The notes under the pieces were generated by a model. It saw only the letters and a list, made by a program, of their open reading frames with translations, ran no database searches and was not told the origin of the DNA. A stretch of DNA of 57,783 nucleotides from Basidiobolus meristosporus CBS 931.73 (Eukaryota; Fungi; Basidiobolomycota), in the NCBI GenBank assembly GCA_002104905.1, contig MCFE01000562.1, positions 1 to 57,783 of the forward strand, written 5' to 3'. Each line of letters begins with the position of its first letter. Position 1 is the stretch's first letter. Shown one piece after another: positions 15,679 through 57,783 of the stretch. The position numbers were made by a program, and so were the translations under genes.

Positions 15679-15680
15679 GC

Positions 15681-19332: not shown

Positions 19333-20387
19333 TAGAGTACTTCTTTAAAGGTCATTGTATGGCTTCCTTCACTGCTTCTTAGGTTTACTTGGATAGTTGC
19401 TTCTCCCACTGCATCAGGTGTTCCATTGTCACCCATGAAAACCTTCTTAATTGGAATTTCATGATATTGGGTAAAAAGTTCATTTTGGTGTGTAAAGTGT
19501 TGAGGTGCTCCAGAGTCAATATACCACATCTGAGAATCCTTGTTTGTGGTCATATTCAGTGCAGATATGAATAGTCTATCTTCAGTTGTTGCAGCATTTC
19601 CATATTCAGGCTTCTTTTGCTGATTATCTTTCTTTTTGAGACACCGGTCTGAAGTGTGTTCTTTCCTTTTGCAGTAGTTGCAGAACAGGTTGCTGTTGTC
19701 TTTGTAGGGTCTTGGGTACCTCCTTTGTTGGTTATCATTGCTTATTAAAGCATTTTCTTCTTCCTTCTTATTGGCACTTGATTTTCTTAATTTTTCATCC
19801 AGGAGCCTTCCATATACATGGTTTAAGGTCAAATCTTCAGTTCTGGACTCTAGGGCTGATACAAAGCCCTGAAACTTGTCTGTCAGGCTATTCAGGATGG
19901 TAACTATCACATCCTCATCAGTAATTGGTATGCCCACAGATTCCATCTCATCTACCAGCAGGGTAATTCTGTTGATTAGATTTTTCATATCTTCTCCTGG
20001 CAGCATCTTTGTAGTAAGGAGTTTTGTCTCAGATACATTTTCTTATCAGCTGAACATGACTGGTAGGTGTCTTCTAATGCTTTCCAGGCATTCTTTGCCA
20101 TTTTTGCTCTTGAGCATTGAATTAGCAATTTGTCCTTAACATTAAGGCAAATGCAGTTAAAGGTACTTTGTTCTTGCTTCTGGTACTTTAAGGCTTCCTC
20201 TCCCACATTTTTAGGAGGGCATTCTTCTCCCATGACAATATCCCAGAGGCCTCTTTCTTGCAGCAGCATCTTCATCTTCACCTTCCACACTTGGTAGTTA
20301 GATCCTTCCAACTTTTCAGCAGAGGGAAAAATTCCAGTAATAGCAGTAGTAGACATTGCAGAGAGTGACAGCTTGGGGCTCATAACC

Positions 20388-22809: not shown

Positions 22810-23799
22810 TCAGTCGTCTAGCAGGAAGGAGTCTTTCAAGGATGGCCCGAAGTTGTATCGAGAGCCGAACTTCTCTGTTCTGAAACTAGGTACGCCGGTG
22901 GGGTCATCTGGGGAGTTCGGCTCCTTCTTCAGCCCGATCGGCCTGTCTTCAGGCGATCTCTTGTTGACCTTGACCCGATCAAACACGAAGTCCACCCGAT
23001 AGTTCATCCCGTCGTTGCTATCCCAGAAGATCTGATCCCCCACCTGATACTTCACCGCAAAGAACATCGACTGCTTATTCGGCAAGATGCGGTTGAGCCG
23101 ATTACTAAGGTCGATCCGAAACTTGAATCGGTCGATCCCGCCATGGTCTGACCTGACCAACGAGTCCACGTAGTCAGCGTTGGTTTCGTCCACGCTTTTC
23201 CAATAGTTGAATGTATACCGGATGGTGATCACCTTGTAATAGCTTAGGTTTTGTACCTTGATCAGCCCTCTTAAGTCGTTCTCGTCTGGCGACAGGTCAA
23301 TCTTGTCGACGAGCACTGGTCGGGAATCACTCATGGTTCGGGCGTATATGCTAGGGGGGAAGTTGGGCAGTCGGATGGAAAGCCTGAGTTTCGTCTCGAC
23401 CTCGGGCTCGTTCTCCTCATCGGAGGAATTGGAATCTTCCACATCGGAGCTGGGATTCGAGATGACTTCAGGCCTTTCCCCCTGTTTGAATAACTTGATG
23501 TGCTCCAAGCTGGCGCCAAAGTGGACAAACTTTGTTGGAGTGGTAGGTTGCGAGCGCGAGTTACCTTTCAGCACGGGCTTTACCACCTCCCCACTCCGTT
23601 TGCGCAGCAGGGGCGGTGGTGGAATGGGGATTTTCATTCGCGGCTTTCGCGTTTGCCAACTGTGGAGTAAAGCCTCCGGGTCACTGGGTGAAACCGAGAG
23701 AGAACTCAGGGAGAAGGAGAGTCCATTGTCACTGGGCTCGATGATTCTAGGCTTGGTCTCGTCGGTCATTTTCCGACTGTCTCCATAGTGAACACTCAT
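22810..23799 (-). CDS. PP1 glycogen-targeting regulatory subunit with CBM21 domain (Gac1/Gip2/Pig1-like)
   Basis: 329-aa single ORF. RVxF-type motif KFVHF after RKRSGEVVKPVLK. CBM21 signatures GLIKVQNLSYYKVITIRYTFNYW and FFAVKYQVGDQIFWDSNDGMNY. C-terminal FGSRYNFGPSL motif. Confidence 0.9.
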   Translation of the reverse strand: MSVHYGDSRKMTDETKPRIIEPSDNGLSFSLSSLSVSPSDPEALLHSWQTRKPRMKIPIPPPPLLRKRSGEVVKPVLKGNSRSQPTTPTKFVHFGASLEHIKLFKQGERPEVISNPSSDVEDSNSSDEENEPEVETKLRLSIRLPNFPPSIYARTMSDSRPVLVDKIDLSPDENDLRGLIKVQNLSYYKVITIRYTFNYWKSVDETNADYVDSLVRSDHGGIDRFKFRIDLSNRLNRILPNKQSMFFAVKYQVGDQIFWDSNDGMNYRVDFVFDRVKVNKRSPEDRPIGLKKEPNSPDDPTGVPSFRTEKFGSRYNFGPSLKDSFLLDD

Positions 23800-34752: not shown

Positions 34753-35992
34753 ATGTTCCTCACCACAGCACCGATTCCTATGGATTTTGAAACCGACCAA
34801 GATGCCCTGCTCTACAAGAGTATTTGTAGCGTCTCCAACAAATTATCCAAGTACTTGAGCACCGAAAAAAGCAATGTCCTGTACTCCCCCCTCTCCGTCA
34901 GCTTAGCCTTGTTATTACTGCTTAATGGCACCTCGGAGCAGGCCGATAGTAGAGAGGAGCTGTTAGCATTCTTCGATATCGTTGACGACAGAGGGGAAAA
35001 ACTAGACAAGCTGAACTCCATTATGAACACCTCATTGAAGGCGTACTTCAGCCAAGACAAGAACGGTTCCGCGAACAAAGACCAAACCGACTTCATCGTA
35101 GGCAATTCCCTCTGGGGGGACCAGATATTCCCTTCCTATGTTAGCAGAATCCAAGATCTATTCGAGGCCGAAGGCTTCCCAGTCCCGAAGAACGGCAAAG
35201 AGGTGAACGACTGGATAGAACAAAAAACAAATGGTCATCTGAAACGGTTTTTCGATGATGATAAGCAGTTCTCCAAAGATTCCGTCATGTTGCTCAACTC
35301 CGTGTACTTCCGTGGCAACTGGGCTATTCCTTTTGACCAGCAACAGTCATACATGGGAGAATTTTCCACAAGTAAAACCCACATGGCAGAGGTCCGCATG
35401 ATGCGCTCGAGCGGAGAAAAGTGGGAGCACAAAGAAAACGGCAAGTATGAAGTGTTGAGACTACAGTATAAAGACACGAAATTCAGCGCCAGCATAGTGC
35501 TTCCTAAGGAAGTGCTTACCTTTCAAGAGGCTGAGGCCATGATGACCAAGGAAGATTGGGACTTCGTATATTTGCAACGTTCGATGGATAATGAAGGAAC
35601 CGTAATTATCCCGAAATTTGATCTTGAACACAGCGTGGAGTTAAAGGATGGGTTGGTGAAGTCTGGAGTGAAGAAAATATTCAATAGAGCGGAGTCTGGG
35701 TTGACTGAGCTGTGCGCATCACCCATTGAAGTCAAGCAAGTCTATCATAAGTGCAGGATTCAAGTCGACGAAACAGGTATTGGCTAATATCCACTATTTT
35801 CCATAGCATTCAATCTAACCTAACCTTTCTCCAGGCTCTACGGCAAGCGCGGCCACGGCGATTCTAATGATGAAGTGCTGCCTACCAATATCACCGCCGT
35901 TTTACTTCGAGTGTAACCGGCCCTTCTACTTCATCATTCACACCGACCGGGGTATTCCACTGTTTGTTAGTTATGTTCAAGATCCAAAATAA
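34753..35992 (+). CDS. Serpin (serine protease inhibitor family), intracellular, 2 exons
   Basis: Exon 1 34753-35776 has NVLYSPLSVSLAL, VNDWIEQKTNG.L, LLNSVYFRGNW..PF and IPKFDL. Intron 35777-35834 (58 nt). Exon 2 gives hinge/RCL DETGSTASAATAILMMKCCLP and the serpin signature FECNRPFYFII. No signal peptide. Confidence 0.93.
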
Positions 35993-37607: not shown

Positions 37608-39305
37608 CTAGCGTTTACCGTTTACGTATTCCTTCATCCGCTCATAATTTCTTTCGATGGTTCTCCTAGCGCCCCTCCATTTCCCTGGCCCCACCAGGCG
37701 AAAATTGGCTGGCCACCTTGGGGCGAAGAACGATTTCCATGCCAGCTTTAGGCTTCCATGCTCTCTTAGAATGGCCCACAGGGATGGGTAGAATCCGCAC
37801 AGGCGAGCTAAATCATCCAGATATCCTTGATTTGGCTCCCATATAACACGCTGAGTGGAAGGCAGACGCTTCCTCTTATCTTCCAAGTATCGGGAGATCT
37901 CGGTGCTGGATGGAAGTGATATAGCACCGGTCCATAGGGAGGTGATGTATCTATTCTGAACGTCGCTGCAAAAACGTCAGTATAATGTGGATGAAAATAC
38001 TGGAAATTCACGATTACCTCAGGATAAATGTCGAGTCTAGACGAGAAGCAATCTTCAGTTAAGCGGATCACATGTGACACGTGCGAGCCTAAGCTTACCT
38101 ATGGTGAACACAAATCCGAGAAAGGCAATGCTGGGGTCATTCGGAGGGAAGATTCCCTGGTAAAGCCAGAGTGGCCCACGCTCGCAAGAGCTTTTCTGCC
38201 TGGGTTGTCCGCCCAAGACATACTTGTTGACATCGTCCTCTGTAAAGAAAGGAAAATCCAATTTGAATCCGGTGGCCAAAATAATTGCATCTACGTTGGA
38301 CACCACATCACCATTACAAAACTCGATGGATCGGCCATCATCCAAAAACCGCTTTACGGCTGGCTTCGTGAGGACATGGCCAGAGGCCAGTCGCTCAAGA
38401 AGAGCACCGCTAGCTGCTGGAGGCTTCTCCATGAACGAGAGCTTCTTACTAGGATTAAGCCATCCCAGGGGTGGTACCATAATGAAATTTGTGATCAGGA
38501 AATTGCTGAGCCATGTGGGAATGATGGAGGCGAGAAATCGAGAGATCCCCAAGTCGAGCGGGAGCCCCTTGTTGGTTAATCGGGGAAGTATCAACGTCCC
38601 GCTTCGAGAAGAGATCACTACCTCCTCTGCCGTGTAAGATAATTCACCAGCAATGTCACATCCGCTTGTACCAGATCCGATCACAACCACACGCTTGCTC
38701 TGAAACTTGAATGGTTCGTGGTAATCCAACGAATGAATGATTTCACCACGGAATTTCTCCATGCCTTCGTATCTGGCCTCGTTCGAATGATAGTTGTGCC
38801 CAGTGGCAACAATCACATGATCGAATACTTCATCTATCGGCTCGGGGTTGCCTGAGGCAGCACTCAGGTATCTCAGTCTCCAACCGCCGTTTCCCAAGCG
38901 GCTTACATTGACAACTTTGTGCTGCAATCGAACACTATCCACGAGATTAAATTCCTTCGCATAGTTCTCAATGTATTTGTTGACGTATTTTTGAGGAAGG
39001 TATTGGGGCCATCCTGAAGGGAATGGGTAGTCGGGATATGGCGACATGTCTCTACTCATGATGAAGACGATTCCTTTATACATTGGTGTGGGTCCACCCT
39101 TGCATCCCTCGTAATGCCATAGACCACCTAGCCATGGATTCTGCTCAAAACAAACTGGGATGAGGCGCCCCTTGGTTTCCAAGCATGCCTTTACTGCATT
39201 CAAACCGCCAAGCCCTAGTCATACTGTTAATCCCGTGGATACCAGCTTCGTTGAGGTCAAATGAACTATACCTGCACCGATGATAGCTACTCGTTTACCA
39301 GCCAT
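37608..39305 (-). CDS. Class B flavin-containing monooxygenase (FMO)
   Basis: MAGKRVAIIGAG|LGGL (FAD motif, intron 39215-39271), FMO signature FRGEIIHSLDY, NADPH motif GSGTSG, ATGF. 19-nt micro-exon 38018-38036. C-terminal PANFRLVGPGKWRGARRTI. Exact last exon uncertain. Confidence 0.9.
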
Positions 39306-39558
39306 GATTTCAGCCTGAAGATCGTCTGAGCGGGAATTTATAGGCCAGGAGCTTGACTCTGGATCTACAATGGGCAGTGCCATCAGTTGAACCCAGTTAT
39401 AATCCAGTTTGTCCCTGTCCGAGTTGGCATTTGATGTGCCCATTTAAGGAATGAAGTCGTTCTACATAGCATCATGCTGATTTTCTTGATTTTATTATTG
39501 GGTTGCCCAGGAGCATCCAATGAACTGAGGGCAGCCTGATTCATGGAAGCATGGAACA

Positions 39559-40304
39559 TTACATTGCCATCTGTGACCAGGTGATGATCTCCAGGATTGA
39601 TTTCACGATGGGTTTGGTCTCTTGTAATGACATGGGTAAGGTGTGCCCTTTTCTGTGATCGAAGCACACAGTCATGCCATCGCACAGAGAGAGCAGCCCA
39701 AGGCTCTCCTCGTACCACTGGTCTTTTCGTCCGACGATGTGACAGGTGGGAATATGAATTAACCCGTGTCCGGGCGTGCTGGCTTTTTTCCCCATTGCCT
39801 CATATCGATCCCCAGTTTCGATGTTCCAAGGCCGTGTGCCACAAAAGAAGATTGCAAACTTAAACATCGGATAAGGGTGATGTTCGTGATCCCGAATCAA
39901 GATAGCGGCTGCCAGCGCAGCTCCCTGTGAAAATCCCATCACCCCATCGAACGGGCCTTCCTCCTCAATAAACTGTAGCACATAGCTGTGTGCATCCATA
40001 AGTTCCTCTCTGCTTGGCGGGGCGGAGTAAAACGTGCGATAGGGACCAACGAAAAAGTCCCTGATTCCTACGATGAAGCCAATGTTAATAATCGAGAATC
40101 TTTTAGCAACCAAATCGTACCTTCTGCTGGGTCGCAAATCAATGGGGCCTCTAGGAAGGTGAATTCACACATGGAGTCCAACTGTTCCCGGATGGCTCCC
40201 GTTTGAATTCGAAATATTTCGGCACTGGTCCCCATACCGTGGAGGCACAAAATTCTAGACTTGGCATACTTGAATAAAGGAACCCGAGTTAGTGTGAAGA
40301 CCAT
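39559..40304 (-). CDS. FSH1/LovG-like serine hydrolase (possible trans-acting thioesterase), 2 exons
   Basis: RILCLHGMGTSAEIF, GPFDGVMGFSQG nucleophile elbow, IPTCHIVGRKD (Asp) and HRKGHTLP (His); one ~55-nt intron after CDPAEG. Confidence 0.88.
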
Positions 40305-40979
40305 GGTTTTGTCATAGTAGCACTCAAGGACTGATGTTCCTACCATAGCACCAAATACTGAACGAATGAAGAATGGCTGAGTGCATCTCACATTTTATGT
40401 GATGAATCAAGTTAGTCCCACGTTGCTTTCGAGAACCGGTTCAGCGGAAGCTGGCTTCGAGTGGAAGTTTGTGTCACTACGTATGCTGGGCTACACTGTC
40501 GCATTGCTTGTAGCCCGGTTCCATGCAAGCGCTTGCCAAAGAGGGAAATTCCTTTAACACTGAGTCGTACAAAAGCAATTATCCTTCATTGAAGGATGTC
40601 ATCCAATAGTTCATGCAATTTTATCGGCCAGAATAGATCACGAAAGTATATAGAGGCACAGATTACTTCCTTCTAGAATAACCAGTTCCTTGGCGATGTG
40701 ATCAGGAATCCTCGGGTAGCTGAAACCCAGCGGTAAAATAGTCATTCATACCAGCATTCATCCCCAATGTCAAGTCAAGCCCACAACCACTATCGCCATG
40801 CAACATTAGTCATGGGAGCTGTAACTCCATTATCCTGAAATAACCAGCCTTGACGAATGCAGAAGTGGATTGTCATGATTCCTGGGGTGGCAACCGAAGA
40901 TAAATGAGAAATGCTAGAGATATCTCGCAGCATCCTTTCTTACCTCCACTCATCAACCTAACACCAGCCCTCAAGTAAA
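40305..40979. promoter_or_regulatory. Divergent intergenic region shared by the two hydrolase genes
   Basis: Head-to-head ATGs at 40304 (-) and 40980 (+); contains palindrome GAACCGGTTC at 40433-40442. Regulatory role inferred from geometry only. Confidence 0.5.
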
Positions 40980-42449
40980 ATGCCTACTGGACACTTCGTA
41001 TTCAAGGACCCGACTTTCGAGTTTGAATTCATTCGCCTCTTGGGCTACGCCCCATTTGATGGCGCCGATATCGCTGAATGCGTGGCCACAGCTTTGCGCA
41101 TCACTGATGGTGATTTCGAAAGCTGGTACCGGGAATGGTGTGATACCGCTCAACAGGTGAAGGGTAACCTGCAGATTCCCAAGTATAAACGAGAGCTCCA
41201 AATACCTAACAAGATTCTAGCCCAGGGAATGGCTGCGTCGAGGCATGGTGACGAAGTTGGCGCGAGGAATGCCTTTCTGAGAGCCTCCAACTACTACCGT
41301 AGCGCCGAGTTCTTCTTGCATGGAAATCCAACGGACCCACGGGTAGTGGCCACTTGGCAATTGAGTGTCGATGCGTTCCGGCTAGCCTTGGGGTTTTTCA
41401 AGACCAATGTCGAGCTGGTTGAGATCCCATATGAGGTAGGTGACCCGGCAAATACACCACTAATGTTGCACTTGATGTCCCATCTCCTATCATACCATAG
41501 AATACTACTCTGCCGGGCTACCTATTTTACTCTTCAGATTATCATAAGGGGAAAAACGAAGCCAGACCACTCTTGATCCATCACGGTGGATTTGATTCTA
41601 TTCAGGAAGAGTGCTACTTTATGTCCGCGGCTGGGGCAATCTCCCGCGGCTATCATACGCTGATATTTGAAGGCCCTGGTCAAGGAGGAGTTCTAAGAAA
41701 ACAGAACATCAGATTCCGACCTGATTGGGAGGCAGTTGTTACTCCCGTGGTTGATTGGGCCTTAAAGAGGGAAGAGATCGACCCTCTAAAGATAGCGCTG
41801 ATGGGAACCTCACTTGGAGGGTGGGTTAATCATATTCAATGCTGAGCTACAGATCATCGACTAACCCTCCCGCATTAACCACATATTTTTGGCATTTCTA
41901 AGTTTCTTGGCAGTGAGAGCAGCCGCGTTTGAGTATCGCCTAGCGGCCTGCATTTCCATTGATGGCTTCTATGATTTTTGGGAGGTTGGGAAAGCCAAAA
42001 TGCCCGCAGCCTTTATGTCACTCTGGGAGACTGGCATGCTATCTGATTCCATGGTTAGTAGCCTTGTGGCGGGAATCTGCAAGTACAGTCCATCGCTACG
42101 CTGGGAAATCGCCCACACACTGTACTCATTCGGAGTGGAGAATTTTGCCGATGCCGTGACTGAGATCAAGAGGTACAACCTCAAAGATGGGGTGGCTGAG
42201 AAGGTTCGCTGTCCTACTTTAATCACAGGGGCAGAAAAGAGTATTTATTACACGCCAGAATCTCAAAATCGTCCAATCTACGACCACCTCACTTGCAAGC
42301 AAAAAACCTACATGTTGTTCGCTGAAGAAGACGCTGGGGGTGTACACTGTAAGATGGGGGGCCTGCTTCTATGCCATCAGAAATGCTTTGAGTGGCTTGA
42401 TAAGCAACTGGATATCAAGAGAGCGACTCGTGAACTCATCAACAACTGA
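40980..42449 (+). CDS. Alpha/beta-fold hydrolase (S9/FrsA/DHPON-hydrolase-like), 4 exons
   Basis: N-terminal FEFIRLLGY..FDGADIAEC, FLRASNYYRSAEFF, GGFDS..EE, FEGPGQG, nucleophile elbow MGTSLGG, C-terminal GGVHCKMG. Three GT-AG introns (~41156-41207, ~41436-41500, ~41821-41904). Confidence 0.88.
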
Positions 42450-42656
42450 ACCACTTAATAAATATCTTGATCCGTAACAACACAAGAATGTCGTAACATT
42501 AATTCGAAACAAACACCCCAGCTGACTACCCTTGGTACACAGGTAGTGGTGGGTACAGGTGAGTTTAGGAATACTCAGGTAATACAGATCAATGTGGCGC
42601 AAAAAGACTTGCGAGATTTCCTTTATTCGGGGGCCATGTGGTTGATGGGTAGATCT

Positions 42657-44924
42657 TCACATCCCAGGTGAGAATTTCTCTTTGATCTTCACCAAATATT
42701 GATTGGCTTTCAATTGAAGTGTCACCAGATGGACCAATTCTGTATCCTGGCCCGGAATCAGCTCAAATTCGAACATGTGTATAAGCCTTGCCAACACCAA
42801 ACGAGATTCCATCAATGCGAAGCTAACAAAAATGGTTAAAAGGACTCCTCTTTAACAGATCACATGGGCCACTAACTTCTTTCCAATGCAGTTTCGGGTT
42901 CCCGCACTAAACGGGTAATACGCATCCCATGTAGGTTCGGTTCCTCCTGGAAGCCAACGTCCCGGAACAAATGCCCTTGGATTAGCCCAGTAGTGCGAAT
43001 TATAGTGCAAGTGAGTGGTGGAGCAAATGATGGTTGTCTAGTCATTCGTTCATTCGAGAAAGTCGTGTTTAGTGGTTATCAGTGGGCGCACTTGATATTT
43101 CATTACCTCTTGAGGGACGTAGTAATCTCCAAAAGCCACATCACTAGGTGCTTCCCTGGAGAATCCTTCATCTATGTTAGTGATGATTAGATGATGGCGA
43201 TGGGAATGCCTGGCTCCTTACCACCCGCCGCAGGGGGCATTAGCCTCATAGTCTCGTGAATGACAGCGTTCAAATAAGGTAGCTCTTTGGTGGCTGAATG
43301 AGTAGGCACTGAATCTTTGGTTGGGAAGGTAGATTCTATCTCGATTTTTAGCTGCCTCATGGCCTCGGGGTTTTGGAGGAGGAACATGATAGCGAACGCA
43401 ATAGAGTTACTAGTGGTTTCAGATCCGGCCATTCTATATGAATGCATTTAGCGTGGAACAGGTGGGTATTTCCGATGAGTGCTCTTACAAAAACACTATG
43501 ATTTCATCTTGAATGTCAAGATCACTCAGTGAGTCTTCTCCATTTTGAGTGTTAATTAGTACTTGCAGTATGTCAGGTCGGTGGTGCTCGACAGAGCTCT
43601 TCCTTTTATCGATGATCTGTTGCATAAACTTCGCAGGAGAGTTATGGAGGCTGTATATTAGCATTCTGCTATGGCGTTACCTTGTCGATCCATTCATCAC
43701 GAGCGCTAGGAATGAAAGGAATATATTTCAAGGGAGGAAAAATCTGTTGCTGGATGTAAAATTAGTATTAGCTAGTAGAAGAAAACCCATTTTAGTTACC
43801 ATTGCAGTCATGCGCAAAGAGGATGTCAGTTTCTCGGGTAATGGATGCGATCCGTTTGCCACAATGTTGAACGTGCCTCCAAATGCGATTTCGCCAATGA
43901 TATCCTATTACAGGCGCCATTGATTAGACACAAAGGATTGTATGCACAAACTAGTGCGATATACCAAAGCTAGCATATTGAGAGTCTTATATATATCCAC
44001 TGTAGCAGTACCGTTATTACTGAGGCAATCCTTCTGGAACTTGCAGACCAATTCCAGTATGCAGCCTTGCACTAGTGGTTCTAGTGACTTGACGTAGGAT
44101 AATGAAAATGCCGTGGACAAAAGACGACGCTATAGAATCTAGAAGATGAGCCACCGTCACAGACGATCAGAGGGTTTCAATCTTACCCTGCTTTTATGCC
44201 ATGGCTTCTCGGTGGCACTGAAGAGAGTAGGGCGGTGCACTTCTTGGCGAAATTTGATGTACATCTTGGATTTTGGGAAATCCGCTGACACCAACACCTA
44301 CCGCGGAAAGTGAATAGAACGCAATGTACAGGGATCAATCAAAATGAGGTTACTATACCTTTCGAACCGCCTCTTTATCTGCAACTAGTACAACACCCGG
44401 GGCTATTTAAAATGGAAAGACATCGAACAGGTCAACACATTGCTACCAAGGCTAGATACATAGAAATAATGTTACCAACGCATACCACCGACCCGAATTT
44501 ATCGTGCAGCTCCAGAGCATGCTGAAAGCTGTATGTTGCATGGATCAAATTGGGTATTAGGGCTGGAGCTTTTGCATAGAATCAAGTTAAACCTCACAAA
44601 CCCCTTGCCACGTATCGATTGCCATAGCCACGGAAGCCCCGATAAGCGATACAAGAAAGGGCCAGGTATCCTACGTAAAGGATCGAAGAAGAGCGCCTTC
44701 AACATCTAAAGGATTATCTGGTGAGCTTATCCTCCACGAATGAGCCAGAAATTCTGCTCAGTATCTACCGTTGCCAATGCATAAGCCAGAAGACATGTCA
44801 CAGAAATGCCAAATATCCACACTGGCGTGTGATCAGAAAGAGGAAAGGTATCTTCGACCTTGAATGCGGTGGAGACGATAGAAGATACGTTTCCGCTCCA
44901 AGCAGATGGATCAAGAAGCCACAT
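42657..44924 (-). CDS. Cytochrome P450, intron-rich
   Basis: N-terminal TM segment and IPGP motif, I-helix AGSETT, K-helix ETMR, meander PGRW, heme motif PFSAGTRNCIG. Last exon ends ...VKIKEKFSPGM* (TGA at 42657-42659). Some 5' micro-exon boundaries not resolved. Confidence 0.9.
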
Positions 44925-45359
44925 GGTGGTGAGCTAACAAACTTCGTTGGACTCCGCTGAATGTAAACTTCATTCTATATATGGTTTTAAGGGATGACAA
45001 TCGTTGCTTGAAGTTGGATGTTAATTACCCAAGTAAAAGCATTGGGGCCTTCTATCTTTGGTAGGCCCTCTAGTGAGCAGATCATAGCCATTAATGGATA
45101 GTTGTTGAACCATGTCTGTTCCCCAATGTTAATAGAATTCTATACTCCATTGGCAACAATTCACCTGAATTGGCTATAGCCAGTACGGCCCATTCACATT
45201 GTGTAAAACACTTGTATTTGTGAATCCAGGCTGTATTCCTACGTACCACCAAGCACAAACAAACCAAAGTACCGTTTGGACAGTATTCAATAGATGGGAA
45301 ATCACGAAAATCGTTTATTTAACTGATTAGAATTGCCAATCATCCCCAGAGTACAAGAC

Positions 45360-46748
45360 CTACTGATAGTCTCGAAAATCAGTCGTGACGTCATTAGCAA
45401 CGACATCTTGAAAACGTTTTGCATAAGCTCTGCTCATAGATACGGTTACTGTATAGCCCACTCGTATTCCCTTCTTTTCTAACGGATATATCATGACCCA
45501 GTTCTTTACTGGTAGACTGCGACCGTCCAGCAGGTGTGTAAACGAGTTCACTTTCAATCCAAAATCAATTTGATAGATTGGAAATTTCGTCCAATCGTCA
45601 ACATAAAGGGTATTGGAATGAAACCACGGCATGAGATCCATGATCTTGCCAGCCCGCTGCACATCCAATGTCCATTTCATCTGAGAGATCACCTCGGCTG
45701 GTTCATGATGCAAAATAGACCTGCGGATACTTCTTGCTAGCATGGGCATTGCCAGATTCTTCTCCTCCTTGGTGCTTACGCATCCGATAGCATTGCCAAA
45801 ATACCCCACTTTAGGGAGACCGCAATGCCCTCGAACGTCCAAGATGGTGGCCACATTCAGCATCATCTCTTCAGCCGAAGTGAAGATATGGCGATTGAGA
45901 GCATGGACTATATAGGCTTTAAGACAATCCTGCGTGGAAAGATACTCCGAAGGGGAGCTTATGTGTGATAAGCCGGTGGTTAGTTTTCTTTTCAGGATTT
46001 TCGCCGCTTCAATAGGAAAGTAGACTTGGACATGGTCAATGTCATTCCAAATTATATGCCAGATTAACGGGCTATAGCCCTGAATCTTTTCCCACAGAGT
46101 TGATGCCATTCGTGCATGGGCAGTGCCACCTGGGTACTCACAAGGCGGTAGCTGACTGGGATAAGGTGTCGCAATAGACTCCGGTGCTTCCTGGGGATAG
46201 CGAACATGTGTAGGGGCAAGTACGTGTGCTTTCGAGTCTACGTACAATTTAGACCATGTCTGTAGAAATTCAAATATACCAGCCCCATCGGCAACGCCAT
46301 GGCACATGCTAATCCCTAAAGCCCATTGATCAGGTTCGCTTGTAAAGCGAGTTACCTTCACTTTGAATAAAGGCTCATTCTTGTCTCCAGTAGAGATTCG
46401 CATGGCGTTAATTTCGTCGACATATTCCTTAGCATCGGCTTGGTTAAAGCCGCTAAACCTTGATGTCAGCCTAACTGGAATAGGTCTATTCGCCAGTAGT
46501 ATAGTCATGGCTCCTCGAGACAGTACTGAAGGCCTTCGAAATATTCCACAAATGGGAGGATAAAAGGATAATGCGTCCGAGAGAGAGCTCATGAATTTGG
46601 CTTCGTCCAGCTGCCCATCCAAGAGATAATGAAAGCTTACTGGCATGAGAGTGTAGTCTGATGGACTCAAAACCAATTCGGGGTGACCATCCAATGCAGT
46701 TGGCTGCCGAGGCTCGATAAGCACCACAGTTTCTTTCGGAGAAGCCAT
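45360..46748 (-). CDS. CoA-dependent acyltransferase, HXXXD transferase family (BAHD/Tri101-like)
   Basis: 462-aa intronless ORF; CHGVADG (HXXXD), YLSTQD, GYFGNA, and terminal YQIDFG (DFGWG-like). Confidence 0.9.
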   Translation of the reverse strand: MASPKETVVLIEPRQPTALDGHPELVLSPSDYTLMPVSFHYLLDGQLDEAKFMSSLSDALSFYPPICGIFRRPSVLSRGAMTILLANRPIPVRLTSRFSGFNQADAKEYVDEINAMRISTGDKNEPLFKVKVTRFTSEPDQWALGISMCHGVADGAGIFEFLQTWSKLYVDSKAHVLAPTHVRYPQEAPESIATPYPSQLPPCEYPGGTAHARMASTLWEKIQGYSPLIWHIIWNDIDHVQVYFPIEAAKILKRKLTTGLSHISSPSEYLSTQDCLKAYIVHALNRHIFTSAEEMMLNVATILDVRGHCGLPKVGYFGNAIGCVSTKEEKNLAMPMLARSIRRSILHHEPAEVISQMKWTLDVQRAGKIMDLMPWFHSNTLYVDDWTKFPIYQIDFGLKVNSFTHLLDGRSLPVKNWVMIYPLEKKGIRVGYTVTVSMSRAYAKRFQDVVANDVTTDFRDYQ

Positions 46749-47878: not shown

Positions 47879-50800
47879 ATGTCTACTAGCTTCACCCCGG
47901 TTGCTGTGATTGGTGTTGGTTGCCGTATGCCTGGTGGGGCCACTAATCCGTCCAAACTATGGAGCTTACTAAAGGAAGGAAGGAGTGCTCAAGCAGAGGT
48001 TCCCAAAGGCCGTTTCAATGTGGAGGCATTTTATCACCCAGATGGGGATCACAAAGGAACGGTGAGGAATCAATGTTTACTCCCTGGTGTCTAAATCGCA
48101 TAAATTGAGATTTTTCTTAGGCAAATGTCAAGACTGCCCACTTCCTAGAAGAGGACCCTAGCACCTTCGATGCTAGCTTTTTTTCCATCTCCCCGAATGA
48201 AGCCAAAGCTATGGATCCTCAGCAAAGAATTCTGATGGAGGTAGTCTATGAGGCCCTTGAAAATGGTGAGGATACACATATTATATGAAGGCAGCGTTAA
48301 ACTAATCTCCGCTTCTTTTACTCAGGAGGAATACCCATAGAAAGTATTGCGGGTACTGACACTGGAGTCTTTGTTGGTAAATTGATGTTGGAGTTTAGAA
48401 CAATAAACGACGTTACTAATCCCAATATCAGGTTTATTTACAAACGATTATCACGAAATGCTCATTCGAGACGTCGAGACCGCTCCATTGTACCAAGCCA
48501 CTGGTACTGGTCATGCTATCGTGTCCAATCGAATTTCATACTTCTTTGATTTGAAGGGGCCAAGGTAAGCAAAAGAAATCCTGAATTCCGATCATATCTT
48601 GGCTGATACCCATTTCAGTTTTACTCTGGACACAGCATGTTCATCTAGTTTGGTAGCAGTTCATTTGGCATGCCAAAGTTTGCTAACAGGGGAATCTAAA
48701 ATGGTAATCTACACATGTTCCCTATTGGATTCCAGGGCTTCTGCTTAATTTTTATGCTCAGGCCATCGTGGGTGGAACGAACCTGATCTTCAGCCCAGAC
48801 TTGTTTGTGTACGTAAAGTTTCATCAACTTGATCCTGAGCAGGGTCATGAATTAATGTTTTTCACATATAGCGCTATGAGCAACCTACATTTCCTCAGCC
48901 CTACTGGTATTTGTCATACCTACGATAAAGATGCGGATGGTTATGCTAGAGGCGAGGGTGTATGTACCGTCGTTCTCAAGCCCTTGGAGGATGCAATCCG
49001 TGATGGAGATCCGATTCGTGCGGTTATTAGAGGAACCGCTGTTAACCAGGATGGCCGTACCTCAGGTATTACTTTACCTTCTACAGAGGCACAAGAGGCT
49101 ATGATCCGTTCAGCCTACCAAAAAGCTGGCTTAGACTTCAAATCCACTCAGTACTTTGAGGCCCATGTAAGACTTATTTGGGTCTGCTCCAAGAATTTCG
49201 ATTAACCTTTCACTCATTAGGGAACAGGGACCCCAGCTGGAGATCCAATTGAGGCAAGCGCTATTGGACGCGTGTTTGGTGCCGACCGCTTGGAGAACGA
49301 TCCTCTTATAGTAGGATCCATAAAGACCAATATTGGCCACCTCGAAGGCGCAAGTGGTCTTGCTGGTTTAATCAAAACCATTTTGTGCTTAGAGAAAAGC
49401 CAAATACCTCCAAATCTTCATTTTGCAAAAGCTAATAATAGGATCGATCTTGACAAATGGAGGATCAAGGTAAGCACCTTCTTATCCGAGACTACCTGTG
49501 TGGTATTAATGAATAATGTGACCTCTGCAGGTGCCGAATTCTCTATTAGCCTGGCCAAAGAGTGAAGGGTCAGCACCTCGTAGAGCAAGCGTGAATTCCT
49601 TTGGATACGGTGGAACCAATGCACACGTGATTCTAGATTCCGCGGAGTCCTACCTTTATCCCATAGACAACACAGTATCAAACATACATTCTCACCACAA
49701 AAAAGCCTATCTTATCCCTCTTACCAGTAATGATGAAGCGTCAGGTAAAAGAATGGTTGAGAGTTTTGCTGCTTTTCTTCAAGAGGATGACTTGTCTGAG
49801 CGAGTCAGTATCGATGATTTGGCATTCACTTTAAGCTGTCGTCGCTCTATGCTTCCCTGGAGAGCAAGTCTAGTCGTGTCCTCTATTGCAGAGTTACGTG
49901 AAAACCTCCAGACACAAATCAACTTCGTTCACCAAGAGAACAAAGTGCCTAGGGTTGCCTTTGTATTTACCGGGCAAGGTGGACAATGGTAAGGCAAAAT
50001 TGAATCAAAAGACACCAAGCAGCCTGGATATGTATTAACACGTATATATCCTATGCAGGTGGGGTATGGGTAGAGAGTTGATAGAGCGATCACCTCGATT
50101 CAAATCGGTACTGCAACGATGTGATAGTCATTTGCAGACACTACCTGATAGGCCTGCCTGGTCACTGCTGGGTAAGCGCGACTGCCTAAAAACACGCTCA
50201 ATATAATATACCAATGTGTAACTAACCCGATGTTTAGAGGAATTCTTAAAATCCGAGGCCGAAACTCGGGTAAATCAATCCGAATTTTCTCAACCTCTTT
50301 GCACAGCTCTGCAAATTGCATTGGTGACTTTATGGAAATCTTGGGGAGTCGAGGCAAATGTGGTAGTTGGTCACTCGTCTGGTGAAATAGCCGCTGCGTA
50401 TGCCTCAGGAGTGCTTACGCTAGAGCAGGCTATCACGGTAGCTTATTATCGAGGCATTCACATGTCAAGAGCCTCTCTCCAAGAAAAGAAGGGTGGGATG
50501 ATCGCAGTCGCCATGTCTGAAGCTGAGGCAAACGAATTCCTACTGACCGAGTTTTCAAGTGGAGTTGTAGTCGCTTGTATCAACAGTCCAACGAATGTCA
50601 CCATTTCTGGAGATATAGATGTTATAAATGCTATCAAGAGCAACCTGGATGCGAAGGGAGTCTTTGCTAGAATCCTCAAGGTGGATTCTGCCTTCCACTC
50701 ACATCATATGCATCCACTGGGACCGGCGTATCAAAAGGCATTAGAGGCATATCAACTAGAGCCTAGTCAACCTCAAATTCGTATGGTGTCATCGGTCACC

Positions 50801-53800
50801 GGCGCTGCTATAGCAAATGGGGAGGAGCTTGGACCGGCGTATTGGGCAGAAAACATGATGTCTCCCGTCCAGTTTTCCAAAGCAGTCGAAGGCGTTTTAC
50901 TTACTACAGATCGTCGATCAAGATCTAGTAGAGCAATTGATGTTGTGATCGAGGTTGGGCCTCACTCTGCCCTTGCAGGGCCTATCAGTCAAATTATGAA
51001 AGCAATTCAGGTGCCGAAAAGTGATGTTCCATACATATCTACACTAATCCGTGAAAAAGATGCTGAATACACGACCGCGGCTGCGGCAGGAAAGCTGCTG
51101 GAAAGAGGGTTCCCAATCAATTTGGAGCTAATCAACTCTCTGGAAATTCTAAACGACGATCATTCAGTCAGATGTATCCACGGCAAATGCCTTACTGATC
51201 TTCCAACCTACTGCTGGAACCATTCGAACAAGTATTGGCACGAATCGAGAGTTAGTAGGAACTATCGTTTCCGCGTAGAGCCTCGTCACGACATCTTGGG
51301 TGCACTCTGTCCAGATTCTATCGATACCGAGCCGCGCTGGCGAAATCAGTTAAGGATTAAAGAGCTTCCGTGGTTGATGGATCACATGGTGCAGGAAAAC
51401 GTCATCTTTCCAGCGGCTGGGTATATCAGCATGGCTTTGGAGGCAGCAAAGCAGTTCAGTAACTCCGAAGGGGACACTATTGATGAATTTTATCTAAAAG
51501 AAATCTGCATTCAAAAAGCCCTGATCCTGGATGACTCGGAGAATGGTGTGGAAACGCTCTTTGTATTGCGATCAACTCCATCCAGCAGCAAATCCTCATC
51601 AGCGGTATGGAAAGAATTCAGAGTATTTTCCTATGGCGAAAACGAGAAATGGGAGGAGAACTGCCGTGGCCAGATTTCCATTAAACTGACTGGAAGCAAA
51701 GGCACCTCTCATTGCGGCCCAGGCTACGATAAAGTGCAATTATTGGAAGCTGAGAAAGAGTGCACCGTTAATGTAGATTCGGAAGACACGTATGAATCCC
51801 TTGCCAGCGTTGGATTGGAATATGGCATTACATTTAGAGGACTTCGCAATATCAAAGCTGGCAAATCCCAAGCAATAGCAACTGTAGAAGCACAGGATGT
51901 GGAAGAAATCATGCCCTCGAATTATCAAAGCAGCTATATCCTCCATCCTTCAGTTCTGGACGCTTGCTTCCAGCTCATATTTCCTGCGATGACTGCAATC
52001 AATAGCAATCAAGGACTATCCGAGCCTTATGTGCCAACATATATCAAGAAGCTAATCGTCTCCGGTGATTTTGTTACTGAAAAATTCGCTCAAATGAAGG
52101 TTCATGCCATATCGGATATGAAAGGTTTTCGTGAAGCTGAAGCAAGTTTACGTGCTTACTCCACAAGCAACTCCGACGAAGATGAATGCAAGCTGATAAT
52201 GGAGGTTCTTGGATTGCAATGTACAGCCCTCGGAAGGTCTGGAAAGGAAATTAATGAGGCATTGGCCAAAAACCGCTCGTTGTTCTTCCGCATGATCTGG
52301 GCCCCGGATTTCGAGTATTTCACACCAGAGCAAGCGAACTGCCAGTATAAACCAAGCTACGAAGCAAAGAAGGAAGCTGATTTAGTGCCCGTTTTGGAAA
52401 AACTCTCGTTATTTTATATTAGACGTGCGCTCGCCATCATTGACCCAAAAGAAGTTAGCTCATTTGCTCACCATCATCAAACATTCTATGAATGGATGGA
52501 GCTGATGGTGAAAGAGACTGCTATGGGCAACTTGGATTATACTGATCCTGCTTGGTTAACCGAGTCCATGAGTACACTCGAATCACTTGCTAATAGTGTT
52601 TCCGAAATATGCGTCGATGCCAAATTGCTGAATCAAATTGGTTCTAACCTTGAACGAATTCTTAGGGGAGAAGTGGAAGCATTGGAACTGATGTTGAAGG
52701 ACGATCTTCTCTATGATTTCTATCGATATGCGCTAGGAAATGGCCAGGCTTATAACACATTGGAGAAGGTGGCTGATAGCTTTGCTCATAAGTACCCAAA
52801 CGCTAATATTCTGGAAATCGGTGCTGGCACAGGTGGAGCCACCAAAGCCTTCTTGGAATCTCTGGGAGGAGGAAATAACAAGCGAAGACGCTTTGCTTCT
52901 TACACATTTACCGATGTGTCAAGTGGTTTCTTCGAGAAAGCTCAGAATATATTCGCTCATTGGGACTCTTGGATGACCTACAAAGTACTCGACATCGAAA
53001 AGGATCCTTTATCTCAGGTTGGTCCATATCAATAATGCCTATAAACTCCAGTACTCAATCAATATTCCAGGGTTTCGTAGAAGGAAGTTATGACCTAATT
53101 GTGGCCGCCAATGTAAGTTAGGAACCACAAGTTAACTTCAGAATATTCTCTTATTGTCATATCAAAGGTTTTGCATGCCACAGCAAATATGGAAGTAACC
53201 ATGAGTCATGTTAGAAAGCTTTTGAAGCCGTAAGTACTTTGGGCCTGTGTTCAACACCTGCAAATTCACTCACAGTGGTTTTAGTGGTGGCCGCCTCGTT
53301 TTACTGGAGATCACCAGATGTAATTAAAATATGATAGAAAGTAATTTCACAGCATCTTTACTAACATTACAACAGGTTTGCTCCGAGTTAGCGTCATGAT
53401 GGGCCCGCTTCCAGGGTGGTGGCTAGGGGAAGGAGATGGCCGCAAGTGGGCACCTACGATTAATGAGTCTGAATGGGACACTCTGCTTAAGAAAACGGGA
53501 TATTCCGGATTGGATGTCTCTGTAAGGGACTTCGAAGATGAAAGTAAATATATGTGTAGTATTATGATGTCAGAAGCCGTAGGTGAATCTATAGAGCGAG
53601 AGGTATCCGGAAGAAATTCTATTGTTGTCGTTGTCAACGATGACTCAAATGCTTGTTCGGTCGAGGGAGCAATTTTTGCACAGCTACAAGTTGTTGCTAA
53701 GCAAAACCAGCAATCCATCCAAGTTGTTTCGTTCAGTCGAGTATTTGATAGCGATACATTTTTTGGGAGTGTACCAACAGTAATAGTTCTTGCAGAGCTA

Positions 53801-56800
53801 GAACAACCGATTTTGCTCAATTGTGACGAACGGATGTTTCAGGGATTGCAGCGAATTATGGATCAATCATCAGTTGTGCTCTGGCTCACACAGGTACAAA
53901 TCCATTACAAATTGCCGCTCGCAACTTCATTCACGCTAATCTGAAATCTATGTAGGGTGGTTCCGTGGAATGCTCCAAACCTGAAAACAGCTTGATTACT
54001 GGCCTCTCCCGTAGTATTCGTTCCGAAAACCCAGCAATTAACTTGATCGTCATTGATTTGGATTCCAAAGATGGCACGAAAGCGGATCATGTAGCAAAAA
54101 GAATCTTTCAAATATACGAAAAAACCTTAAGAACTGCACAAGAGCAATGTTCTGACCAAGTTCTAGGGCTACTGGAAGAGGAAATTGCCGAGAGAAATGG
54201 CCTCATCCTGATCCCACGAATTATTCCCGACACTGAACTTAATGCCAATCTGAACCAGACTGCCAGTAAGATTCGGGTTGAATCGTTCTACCAAGAGGGA
54301 AGACCACTTCGCTTAGAAATCGGCCAGCCTGGTCTTTTAGATACATTGGAATTTACCGATGACCCAGTAGTCGCTGAGCCATTACACGATGATGAAGTCG
54401 AAATTGAAGTCAAGGCCGCTGGTCTCAACTTCAGAGATATCACTGTTGCCATGGGTGTTTTGACCGATAACTTCCTTGGGTGTGAATGCTCGGGAGTCAT
54501 CTCAAGGGTTGGTGCTAATGCTCCAAGCAATTTGAAGGTAGGAACTCGAGTGGCCACCTGGATTTTAGGTGCGTATTGCAATTATGCACGTAATCCAGCG
54601 ACTCTAGTTCAACCAATACCCGATTCCATGGCATTTGATGTCGCGGCTTCCCTGCCAATTGTGTATTGTACTGCGTACTACGGTCTGATTGATATTGCTC
54701 GACTTCAGCCTGGGGAAACTGTGCTTATTCATGCAGCTGCAGGAGGTGTTGGTCAAGCCGCGATTATGCTTGCCAAGTGGGTGGGTGCCGAAATATTTGT
54801 CACCGCTGGATCCTCCCGGAAAGTCGAATTCTTGAAAAAGACGTACGGCATTCAGGAAGATCACATCTTCTCAAGTAGAGATAACTCGTTTGTCAAAGGC
54901 GTTCTTGATAAGACTCACGGCCGTGGTGTAGATGTCATTCTAAACAGTTTGGCAGGAGAGCTTCTAAGAGAAACATGGGATTGCGTTGCAAACTTTGGCC
55001 GCTTCATAGAGATGGGGAAACGTGATATCCAGGAGAACGGAAAATTAGACATGGGTCCATTCATTCGTAATGTAATGTTCGCTTCGGTAGACCTGACAGT
55101 AATCTTCAGACAAAACAAACCTTTGGGGGCCAGATTATTCCAAGAGGTGATGGCGTTGCTGAAAACTGGTAGTATACGGGAGGTATCTCCTATCACCATC
55201 TATGACTTTTCGAATATAGAGTCTGCATTTCGTTTCATGCAAGCGGGAAAGCACATTGGAAAGATCGTTCTTACCCCCAAGAAAGAAGACATGGTGAAGG
55301 TCCGTGTACCTCCCAGGAAGAAATGCAGCTTCCGTGAGGATAGAACCTACCTACTAGTTGGTTGCTTAGGTGGCCTTGGACGCTCATTATCTATGTGGAT
55401 GCGAAAAAATGGTGCCAAATACTTCTTGTTCCTAAATAGAAGTGGAGTTGAGAAATCGGAAGCAAAATCTTTGGTGCAAGACCTAATGGATGATGGCGCC
55501 ATAGTCAATGTTGTCAAGGGAGATGTGTCTGTCTATCAGGATGTCCAAAACGCCATCGATGCTGCTAAAAAGTCCATGCCTGCAATCGGAGGTGTAATTC
55601 AAGCCGCTATGGTACTCAAAGATGCTATATTCATGGATATGCCTCATAAGGTGTACCGTGATGTGATTCAACCTAAGGTGACTGGATCCTGGAACCTACA
55701 TAATCTTCTGATGGATTCCCCGTTGGAGTTTTTCGTCATGTTCGCTTCACTCTCAGGCGTTATCGGAAACAGGGCCCAATCCAATTATGCTGCAGCAAAT
55801 ACCTATCTAGATGCACTAGCACGCCACCGTCGTAACCTGGGTCTGCCAGGCTCAACAATTGACGTGGGTATGATCGTTGGTGTTGGATATGTGGCCGAAA
55901 ATGCTCAACACGAATCTACGTTAAGAAAATACGGCTATCTGGGAATTGATGAAAGAGAATTCCATGAGATGTTGGATGCAGCAATCTCTGGCCAGCCGCT
56001 TTGCGATAGTAGCGACATGTCAATGGTGGATTCAGAAACCAGTGCGCAGTATGTTACAGGAGTTGGAAATCCGAGGTCCATGAAAAAACATATGACAAAT
56101 GGAAATGAGGGTGAAGGTGATGCTTTTTGGGCTGGCAATGCTAGATTTTCGCATTTGATTGTCATAGCCGATGACGACAGCAAGAAAGGGCAAGAAAGTG
56201 AGATCGGCACTGAAGTACGGGCAATTAAAGATTTGCTAAAGGAATGTCGGGACAAATCAGAAGTTGCACTCGTAGTAGTTGAAGCCTTTTTGAAGAAGCT
56301 GTCCGTCATATTGGCACTTCCTATTGAAAATTTGGACCCGGCCCAATCCACATCGAAGTATGGCCTTGATTCACTGATTGCTGTTGAAATTCGTAACTGG
56401 TTTTATCGCGAATTCACGGTAGATGTTCCTCTGTTTGGTAAGCTGCCAGTCTATACTATTTTTTGCTTCGTTACTAAAGTAAATTTCCTATCATTTGAAA
56501 CATAGATATTTTGGGCAGTAAATCCATCTATGCCTTGGCAGAAAAAATCGCTAATAAGATTCAACTTGATGCAACCGAAGAGACTCATGAGCAATCTCCC
56601 AACGCTAAGGGGTCACAAGGAATGAAAGAACTTATTGGACCATTAGATGAACCTTCACTTGTCTCCAGACCTCGAACCCAAGATCTCTTAATGTCTCATG
56701 GACAGCAACGCTTATGGTTTATGCAAAAATACTTGGAAAACAAATCTGCCTACAACGTGACACTAGCTGTCCGGTTCGATGGCTCTGTGAATGTTCGCGC

Positions 56801-57783
56801 ATTAGATTCAACCTTCCAATACTTGATCCAGCGTCACGAAGTACTTCGTACTAAACTTTTGCAGAAGGATAACAAGTTTGTTCAAGAAATCGCCACTTTG
56901 GTCCCATTCACTATCGGAATCATTGACTTAACGGATGGTATTGATACCGACAAGGAGGAAGCTATCAATAAGGCTTTCAAGAACGCTAGTGACCACGTAT
57001 TTGATTTGGAGGCTGGCCGCGTCATTTTGGCGAACTTACTGCAGTTTGACAGTTTATCTTCAGTTTTGATTCTTGGAGTCCATCATGTTGCTTGGGACAG
57101 AGCAAGTGTTGATTTACTGATAAAGGATATGGTGGCCATATATTCTCAAGTTGCAGCAGGATTGGAGCCACCTGTGTTAGAGCCTCTCTCACTTCAGTAC
57201 GCTGATTTTGCCATGTGGCAGCATGAGCGACTCCAAGGGCAATTTTTGGAGAGTCACCTACAGTATTGGAAGGAGAAGCTGGATGGGATCCCAGATGCAA
57301 TGCCTCTACTTCCGTTCGCCAAGGTAGAGCGGAGACCCGAGATTCAACAATTCCAAACCCAATCCGTACGTTATGTTCTAGAGAATGAAGCTTGGGAAAC
57401 AGCAAAGAAAGTAGGGCAAACTTATGAAGCAACTCCGTTCTTCCTGTTGATGGCCACTCTTCAGCTATTGATGCACAGCTATAACAAAGAGGAAGAATTT
57501 ATTGTGGGATTTACTGATAGAAACCGCACACATCCTGCATTAGAAGAAATCGTTGGTTTCTTCGTTAACATTCTTCCGATTCGTGGCAAAGTTACAAGTG
57601 ATACTACTTTTGCCGAGGCGCTAGAGAACGTACGCAAAGAATGCCTAGAGGCTTATGAGTACAGCGCCCTACCATTCGACCTGATTCTAAGCCAACTTCC
57701 TGAGAAGCGCTCCATGGCACATTTCCCGATATTCCAAATACTGCTCAACTACCAAATCTACCAAATACCGAAGGTTAGCTTCC
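47879..57783 (+). CDS. Highly reducing iterative PKS fused to an NRPS condensation domain (KS-AT-DH-cMT-ER-KR-ACP-C...), 3'-truncated by the window
   Basis: About 16 GT-AG introns. KS DTACSSS (Cys codon 48638), EAH|[16 protein letters not shown]; AT GHSSG and AFHS; [12 protein letters not shown] and HPSVLD; c[12 protein letters not shown] and NVLHAT; ER GLNFRD and HAAAGGVGQ; KR GCLGGLG and SNYAAAN; ACP GLDSL (Ser 56371). After intron 56438-56505 the frame is stop-free to 57783 and encodes a C domain ([22 protein letters not shown] at 57081-57098, [17 protein letters not shown]). Confidence 0.95.

Follow-up and report, generated by a model that had tools for sequence, protein, structure and literature searches.

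The window analysed comprises the entire NCBI contig MCFE01000562.1 (57783 bp) of Basidiobolus meristosporus CBS 931.73, a frog-gut fungus. Its downstream end is occupied, on the forward strand, by what would be one gene, starting at 47879 and still open at the contig end (57783), in which an iterative HR-PKS part is followed by a condensation (C) domain. The features of this region are as follows.

47879-56437, + strand: HR iterative PKS part in many exons, with the ATG at 47879 (Pfam on exon translations and tblastn of a relative's proteins)
about 47879-49990, + strand: KS of the PKS part
about 50060-51064, + strand: AT of the PKS part
51287-52243, + strand: DH of the PKS part
about 52760-53400, + strand: cMT, split into mini-exons (Pfam score just below the cut-off; VLHAT and LLKPGG-type mini-exons visible)
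54388-55272, + strand: ER (ADH_zinc_N Pfam matches; intact 11-residue motif; GGVG motif)
55345-55875, + strand: KR of the PKS part
56257-56437, + strand: first part of the ACP
56371-56373, + strand: Ser codon for phosphopantetheine attachment in the ACP (YGLDSL), matched in the alignment by GLDS in five relatives
56438-56505, + strand: predicted 68-nt spliceosomal intron, phase 1, with GTAAGC as donor, a branch-like TACTAAA and CATAG as acceptor
56506-56681, + strand: start of the last visible exon, with the two remaining bases of the split Asp codon, the final ACP helix and a ~45-residue ACP-C linker
56682-57767, + strand: NRPS-type condensation domain with motifs C1-C7 (PF00668, first ~79% of the profile)
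57081-57101, + strand: catalytic motif HHVAWD (57081-57098) followed by R (57099-57101), read directly
57768-57783, + strand: end of the contig, reached by the open frame with no stop before the last base

Searches were made on individual exons rather than on a joined spliced protein, and Pfam yielded the domain set KS-AT-DH-cMT-ER-KR-ACP, with the cMT just under the cut-off. The NADPH motif of the ER (GGVG motif) looks intact, in place of the dead ER0 that marks the canonical subgroup, and no separate gene for a trans-acting ER was recognised in the window. In the public annotation, two NCBI gene calls (47879-54585 and 54628-56505) split one continuous open frame (53956-56502), so that the PKS is cut in two, the second model ends at an in-frame TAG (56503-56505) inside the predicted intron, and the C domain is missed. 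As the contig physically ends at 57783, the record lacks the final ~95 residues of the C domain and all that follows. The PKS belongs to a small cluster together with an FMO, an FSH1 hydrolase, an alpha/beta hydrolase, a P450 and an acyltransferase-family gene.

The intron at 56438-56505 and the ACP-C junction

The earlier note had read the end of the PKS model at 56505 as an intron running from GTAAGC (56438) to CATAG (56505), and this reading was supported both by its fit to homologous proteins and by its likeness to sister introns. The upstream PKS frame ends at 56437 with a single leftover base, G, and the sequence from 56506 reads AT ATT TTG GGC, so that joining the two would give a G-AT codon for Asp. 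In alignment A1, in which the query was set against five ER-KR-ACP-C-A relatives across the ACP-C junction and its linkers, exon 1 ends at column 80 and exon 2 begins at column 82; column 81 is Asp in 5/5 relatives, and no residues matching the intron occur in them. Homology thus supports the intron, the lone column left between the exons being accounted for by the split Asp codon. Its likeness to the other introns of the gene supports it further: at least nine more short introns (size class 53-70 nt) look similar, and those at 48565, 49470 and 50172 have the same donor hexamer, GTAAGC. The TACTAAA branch-like site lies ~28 nt upstream of the acceptor, and GC content is 0.31 in the intron versus 0.45 in the flanking exons.

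Removal of the intron would rebuild the Asp codon and complete the final helix of the ACP, a helix conserved throughout the relatives of alignment A1, in agreement with the earlier proposal that splicing restores the ACP. If instead the intron were retained, or if the C frame were a decaying relic, the gene would encode an HR-PKS and nothing more, closing at 56505; this is what the public model shows, with its stop at the in-intron TAG. However, retention would remove that conserved helix, and the canonical intron signals are identical to those of the sister introns. The open frame of ~425 codons noted earlier was also recounted as 425 stop-free codons from the junction to the last base (57782/57783), where a run of 428 open codons would arise at this base composition with a probability of ~9e-12, and the C-domain motifs within it are all intact. 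A plain HR-PKS was thus considered very unlikely, and on this comparison of sequences the ACP and C domain are very probably joined on one polypeptide by splicing of 56438-56505.

The condensation domain and its lineage

The Pfam Condensation profile (PF00668) matched residues 59-420 of the last exon at E 3.2e-75 (254 bits, with the curated cut-off at 30.6), spanning profile positions 4-361 of 456, with the contig ending at profile position 361. Core motifs C1-C7 occur in order and are all intact in the visible part, and the HHVAWD core followed by R, to which attention had already been drawn, is confirmed within this match. The domain is of the active HHxxxD type and is predicted to be competent. 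It also contains the block PLLPFAK and a further 19-residue stretch. A phmmer search of the PDB with the C exon returned Txo2 (2.6e-47), the C domain of the PKS-NRPS PsoA (6.6e-42) and LovB (5e-19).

The genes beside the PKS, among them the FSH1 serine hydrolase, the P450 and the acyltransferase-family gene, form a neighbourhood that we take to be loosely reminiscent of the lovastatin cluster. They favour a reading in which the domain would be a structural, LovB-like CON domain that forms no amide, with release of the product by the adjoining FSH1 (LovG-like) hydrolase; LovB-like nonaketide synthases are likewise PKSs with a terminal condensation-like domain and a neighbouring FSH1-type hydrolase. 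However, the LovB family motif is HRxxxDG (PMC13492342), whereas HHVAWDR is found here. The similarity to LovB is also much weaker than that to PsoA, and the ER looks active where LovB has an ER0. This reading was regarded as highly unlikely.

The affinity of the C domain was established from signatures and phylogeny. The motif HHxxxDR was present in 6/6 fungal hybrid relatives versus 1/54 bacterial C domains, while HHxxxDG was found in 48/54 of the bacterial domains and 0/6 of the fungal ones. LPFA occurred in 5/6 fungal hybrids (1/54 bacterial) and NYQ likewise in 5/6 (0/54 bacterial), and the Basidiobolus domain carries HHxxxDR, LPFA and NYQ together. Because of these counts in six fungal and 54 bacterial domains, the blocks that the earlier note had called typical of fungal hybrid C domains can be taken as diagnostic of them. 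A phylogenetic placement, which had been proposed as a check, pointed the same way: in a C-domain tree rooted with distant C-family domains, the query was sister to six Pezizomycotina PKS-NRPS hybrid C domains with support of 99/98. In the ER-KR-ACP tree, the query fell into a 100-supported group with five C-bearing relatives, apart from 54 fragments without a visible C domain. By these sequence-based measures, the C domain is placed in the fungal PKS-NRPS hybrid lineage.

It was also considered whether a bacterial C domain had recently been fused to a fungal PKS through horizontal transfer. Basidiobolus is known for uptake of bacterial genes, including other synthetase genes (PMC7466969), and the best single-domain matches by score were bacterial, at 33-38% identity. 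Among candidates of 234-744 aa, the word search with the C exon returned bacterial C domains only and no Basidiobolus fragment; in the representative-set search with the same exon, multi-module bacterial NRPSs were ranked on summed scores, with no self or near match. However, the rooted tree places the domain as sister to the fungal hybrids and not nested among bacterial domains, the signatures it carries, with DR rather than DG, are absent or nearly so from the 54 bacterial domains, and the PKS part shows the same sister relation to fungal hybrids. Recent bacterial transfer was consequently considered extremely unlikely.

Continuation beyond the contig end

The ER-bearing Pezizomycotina hybrids provide the closest guide to what follows the C domain. 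Their ACP-C junction layout is identical to that of the Basidiobolus gene (P0273, P0275, P0308 and P0380 on locus L002; metagenome and Logan contigs), and HHxxxDR, LPFA and NYQ are common to both. Identity is 44-46% over ER-KR-ACP and about 27-33% over the C domain, and both the PKS and C parts are sister in trees. They differ in that the Basidiobolus host is non-Dikarya (Zoopagomycota), in that its gene has many more introns, one of them inside the ACP, and in its cMT, which is not listed for these relatives. Where contigs could be inspected (P0273, P0308 and P0380 on L002), the arrangement is KS-AT-DH-ER-KR-ACP-C-A-T-R, and every member of the sister clade with a traceable downstream region continues as C-A-T-R. 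C-A-T-R fragments with a named source are those of Metarhizium rileyi, Penicillium malachiteum and Xylaria sp. P0274, with the A-T-R fragment P0415 as its possible continuation, may have the same arrangement.

The preferred reading, one of the two between which the earlier note had left the choice, is that the gene is a full PKS-NRPS, in which an A-T-R (or A-T-DKC) module follows beyond the contig end; about an even chance was given to it. The iterative HR-PKS (KS-AT-DH-cMT-ER-KR-ACP), its ACP fused in frame to the C domain once the 68-nt intron is spliced out, would then build a reduced and methylated polyketide. The C domain would take the finished chain from the ACP thioester and form an amide with an amine, here an amino acid carried by the T domain further downstream; release of the product would be either reductive or through Dieckmann cyclisation.

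A real, if less than probable, possibility is that the gene stops soon after the C domain and encodes a PKS-C of the kind represented by TwmB (wortmanamide). Its chain would be released as the amide or ester of a small-molecule amine or alcohol in free form, and not be passed to an amino acid bound to a carrier. An active-type HHxxxD C domain directly after the ACP is consistent with this, and PKS-C enzymes are an established fungal class (cited in PMC11153888). Neither a hybrid nor a matching A domain was reported for the strain (PMC7466969). In a word search with the 891-aa A-T-R piece of a relative, no Basidiobolus protein of this PKS-NRPS family was among the matches, a result bounded by candidate length (490-1559 aa), by word sharing and by its restriction to annotated proteins; the matches were fungal relatives down to E 3e-106, followed by bacterial proteins at ~1e-82. 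A metagenome scan for the continuation gave only bacterial loci, at 34% identity. Against a PKS-C, A-T-R is present in all sister-clade members that could be followed downstream, and no gene in the window was recognised as an obvious supplier of an amine.

Counted against a full PKS-NRPS were the absence of Basidiobolus matches in the A-T-R word search, the zero hybrids catalogued for the strain (PMC7466969), and the presence in the cluster of the FSH1 and other hydrolases, for which a self-releasing PKS-NRPS would have no need.

Some other non-canonical continuation may also be envisaged, such as the layout of PfaA, in which an ER-bearing PKS is followed by C1-C2-A-T-CT. PfaA demonstrates that ER-bearing PKS-NRPSs with an unusual NRPS part exist (PMC11731387), and the Basidiobolus enzyme too has an intact-looking cis-ER, plus a cMT. 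The nearest relatives found, however, are C-A-T-R and not C-C-A-T-CT, and, going by the described layout of PfaA, such a continuation was judged very improbable.

Evolutionary setting and comparison with characterised enzymes

A survey of 69 zygomycete genomes in 2020 recorded just one PKS-NRPS/NRPS-PKS hybrid, which belonged to a different strain and had a bacterial-like A domain, and listed zero hybrids for B. meristosporus CBS 931.73 (PMC7466969). In all probability the latter strain has such a fusion, of a Dikarya-type HR-PKS to a C domain of the hybrid type, which would correct that catalogue; a gene model that stops inside the predicted intron, together with the contig break, would have hidden it. 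This would not be a new kind of enzyme, and its PKS cluster is marked as a target for expression. For tracing how fungal hybrid synthetases arose, the gene would also supply a deep outgroup. One tentative and rather unlikely interpretation is that it is a branch of the fungal PKS-NRPS lineage older than Dikarya and passed on vertically, in which the cis-ER still works and a cMT is present. If so, the ACP-C fusion would be older than Dikarya, and the ER0 and trans-ER of canonical hybrids would be a later state. Alternatively, the gene may derive from an old transfer from an ascomycete to Basidiobolus.

Among characterised enzymes, the canonical fungal PKS-NRPSs TenS, DmbS and PsoA likewise consist of an HR-PKS followed by a C domain, that of PsoA being the PKS-NRPS match from the PDB. 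They have a dead ER0 and depend on a trans-acting ER (PMC6839510), whereas in the Basidiobolus enzyme the NADPH motif of the ER looks intact and the window shows no gene for a trans-ER. The LovB-like synthases are set apart by HRxxxDG in place of HHxxxDR as well as by their ER0. TwmB, which is likened here by description, likewise combines an HR-PKS with an active-type C domain, and could release its chain onto a free amine (PMC11153888).

Predicted splice junction between the ACP and the C exon

Reading of the DNA and translation of both frames showed that the ER-KR-ACP frame of the highly reducing PKS gene, which starts at 47879, runs to 56437 and leaves one spare G. Read through unspliced, it continues for 22 codons to a TAG at 56503-56505, and the 68 bases at 56438-56505 start with GTAAGC and finish with CATAG, both as the earlier note had described. 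A second frame, beginning (G)AT ATT TTG at 56506, then runs without a stop to the final base of the window, over 425 codons (P ~9e-12 for a 428-codon open run at this base composition). An alignment of the ACP-C junction (A1) was made from five relatives carrying ER-KR-ACP-C in one unbroken frame, with the two exon translations kept separate, and searches were likewise run on single exons and not on the joined protein. In this alignment exon 1 finishes at column 80 and exon 2 starts at column 82. All five relatives have Asp in the one column left between the exons, and Asp is precisely what the split codon G|AT would encode after splicing. The relatives lack any residues corresponding to the 68 bases, which are thus inserted with respect to the protein and do not reflect an assembly frameshift. 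Retention of these bases would cost the ACP its last helix, in keeping with the earlier proposal that splicing completes this domain and opens some 425 stop-free codons. The predicted intron is also like other short introns in the gene, of which at least nine are clear (54-70 nt); three of these share its GTAAGC donor, and GC content is 0.31-0.43 in introns against 0.45 in flanking exons. A few further introns in the cMT region are less certain. The assignment of 56438-56505 as an intron is therefore supported by four lines of sequence evidence.

Clear short introns of the PKS gene
48062-48120, + strand
48266-48325, + strand
48377-48431, + strand
48565-48618, + strand
48704-48761, + strand
49167-49220, + strand
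49470-49530, + strand
49989-50058, + strand
50172-50237, + strand

The public annotation divides the gene between two models.

NCBI gene calls
47879-54585, + strand, 1942 aa, KS to cMT
54628-56505, + strand, 625 aa, ER-KR-ACP

The second call takes as its start a Met inside a frame that lacks stops throughout 53956-56502, and it ends at the TAG within the proposed intron, so that the PKS is cut in two inside the ER domain, at a point across which a relative aligns unbroken. The C domain is covered by no NCBI model, and its frame reaches the physical end of contig MCFE01000562.1 (GCA_002104905.1) at 57783, the window being the whole of that contig. A published catalogue records no NRPS-PKS hybrid for strain CBS 931.73, where it counts four PKS or PKS-like genes, and a single hybrid among 69 zygomycete genomes (PMC7466969).

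Identity and affinity of the condensation domain

The C exon matched Pfam PF00668 over residues 59-420 (nt 56682-57767, E 3.2e-75), and as the match stops at profile position 361 of 456, having begun at 4, the last fifth of the domain is cut off by the contig end. Core motifs C1 to C7 are all there, in order, and the intact core HHVAWD lies at 57081-57098, followed directly by R, both as picked out in the earlier note. The best solved-structure matches were the teixobactin synthetases Txo2 (2.6e-47) and Txo1 (6.5e-43), with the C domain of the fungal PKS-NRPS PsoA at 6.6e-42 and the LovB CON domain far weaker at 5e-19. A LovB-like identity was rejected, as LovB-like domains carry HRxxxDG (PMC13492342), match far more poorly and follow a dead ER.

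The nearest single domains by raw score were bacterial (33-38% identity), so that in B. meristosporus a bacterial graft had to be considered. An initial tree that had no outgroup could not settle the point, and a more careful one was rooted with one epimerisation-like and one starter-like domain. There the query and six fungal hybrid C domains formed a clade (99/98), the query being sister to the six. HHxxxDR was found in 6/6 fungal hybrid domains and 1/54 bacterial ones, so that an R after the Asp characterises the fungal hybrid clade; HHxxxDG occurred in 0/6 and 48/54, LPFA in 5/6 and 1/54, and NYQ in 5/6 and 0/54, respectively. The query has the fungal state at all four, and the blocks that had been called typical of fungal hybrids on first reading were borne out by these counts.

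The PKS part, its relatives and a possible downstream continuation

Pfam searches on the exons gave KS, AT, DH, cMT, ER, KR and ACP. The nucleotide-binding motif of the ER is kept (window 54700-54760, residues ~250-273 of the 53965 frame), and a cis-ER of this kind beside a hybrid-type C domain is unusual. The motif was also found in relatives P0274, P0380 and P0292, while P0273, P0275 and P0308 fail the pattern. The cMT core (53018-53375) is split into several mini-exons, with pieces such as VLHAT... lying between GTAAGT donors, and this may explain a methyltransferase Pfam score just below the cut-off.

A word search with the ER-KR-ACP exon returned only its own 625-aa model at 100%, the next relatives standing at 44-45%. 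Among these relatives, P0273, P0275, P0308 and P0380 are ORF fragments that span ER-KR-ACP-C and enter an A domain. On the three contigs inspected (those of P0273, P0308 and P0380, the last at locus L002) the full order KS-AT-DH-ER-KR-ACP-C-A-T-R was read, with an NAD_binding_4 reductase. L002:4187-16038 (JGI metagenome contig Ga0654440_0002321) holds one such complete ER-bearing fungal PKS-NRPS. All four ORFs break at one A-domain point (Pfam AMP-binding position 171), pointing to an intron conserved at that site. Named members of the relatives' A-T-R family come from Metarhizium, Penicillium, Xylaria and Aspergillus.

In the ER-KR-ACP tree, the query grouped with five C-bearing relatives and a fragment on a long branch, taken from a contig of 4.3 kb (support 100). 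Outside this group fell the remaining 54 fragments, none with a C domain seen. Judged from these trees, PKS part and C domain agree in ancestry, which indicates that the ACP-C fusion was present in the common ancestor with the ER-bearing ascomycete hybrids and would predate the split between the Basidiobolus gene and that clade. Descent of the gene may have been vertical, or by an old transfer from an ascomycete.

A relative's A-T-R piece was used as query in a protein search whose reach was set by annotation, shared words and the length of candidates. Fungal relatives were recovered down to E 3e-106, followed by bacterial NRPSs at ~1e-82, with no Basidiobolus protein; the result speaks mildly against an annotated A-T-R of this family in the CBS 931.73 assembly. 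Scanned against metagenomes, the C exon gave bacterial loci only (34% identity). Given the unreadable downstream sequence and the negative A-T-R search, a full PKS-NRPS, the layout of the relatives, is put at an even chance, and a truncated PKS-C, ending soon after the C domain, is a possible but less favoured reading; other layouts or a dead gene together take up what little is left.

Proposed chemistry, gene neighbourhood and known enzymes

The domain set, the active-site motifs and the geometry of the predicted fusion are what the sequence shows. By established family knowledge, the iterative PKS would assemble a chain, reduced and C-methylated, on the serine of the ACP (codon 56371-56373), and the C domain would direct attack of an amine on the thioester, freeing the ACP. 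In a PKS-NRPS the amine would be an amino acid carried by a downstream T domain, with release by an R or DKC domain; in a PKS-C it would be a free small molecule, as for wortmanamides (PMC11153888). The genes at 37608-46748, upstream of the PKS, are likely cluster partners, and among them no amine-supplying enzyme and no trans-ER was seen.

Neighbouring genes
22810-23799, CBM21 starch-binding-module protein, apparently unrelated to the cluster
34753-35787, serpin, apparently unrelated to the cluster
37608-39305, - strand, FMO-like monooxygenase, likely partner
39559-40304, - strand, FSH1 serine hydrolase, likely partner
40980-42449, + strand, alpha/beta hydrolase, likely partner
42657-44705, - strand, P450, likely partner
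45360-46748, - strand, Transferase-family PF02458 acyltransferase (HxxxD, intron-less), divergent from the PKS, likely partner

Both strands of an AT-rich region at ~13296-20383 carry fragments of a Ty1/copia-type LTR retrotransposon (gag, GAG-pre-integrase, Pol beta-barrel and retroviral SH3-like), which are broken up into short ORFs.

What the annotation misses is very probably a deep-branching PKS-C(-A-T-R?) hybrid of Dikarya type, carried by a fungus outside the Dikarya. Canonical TenS-type hybrids combine an ER0 with a trans-ER (PMC6839510), whereas the Basidiobolus enzyme has an intact-looking cis-ER. Other hybrids that bear an ER are PfaA (PMC11731387) and the relatives found here.
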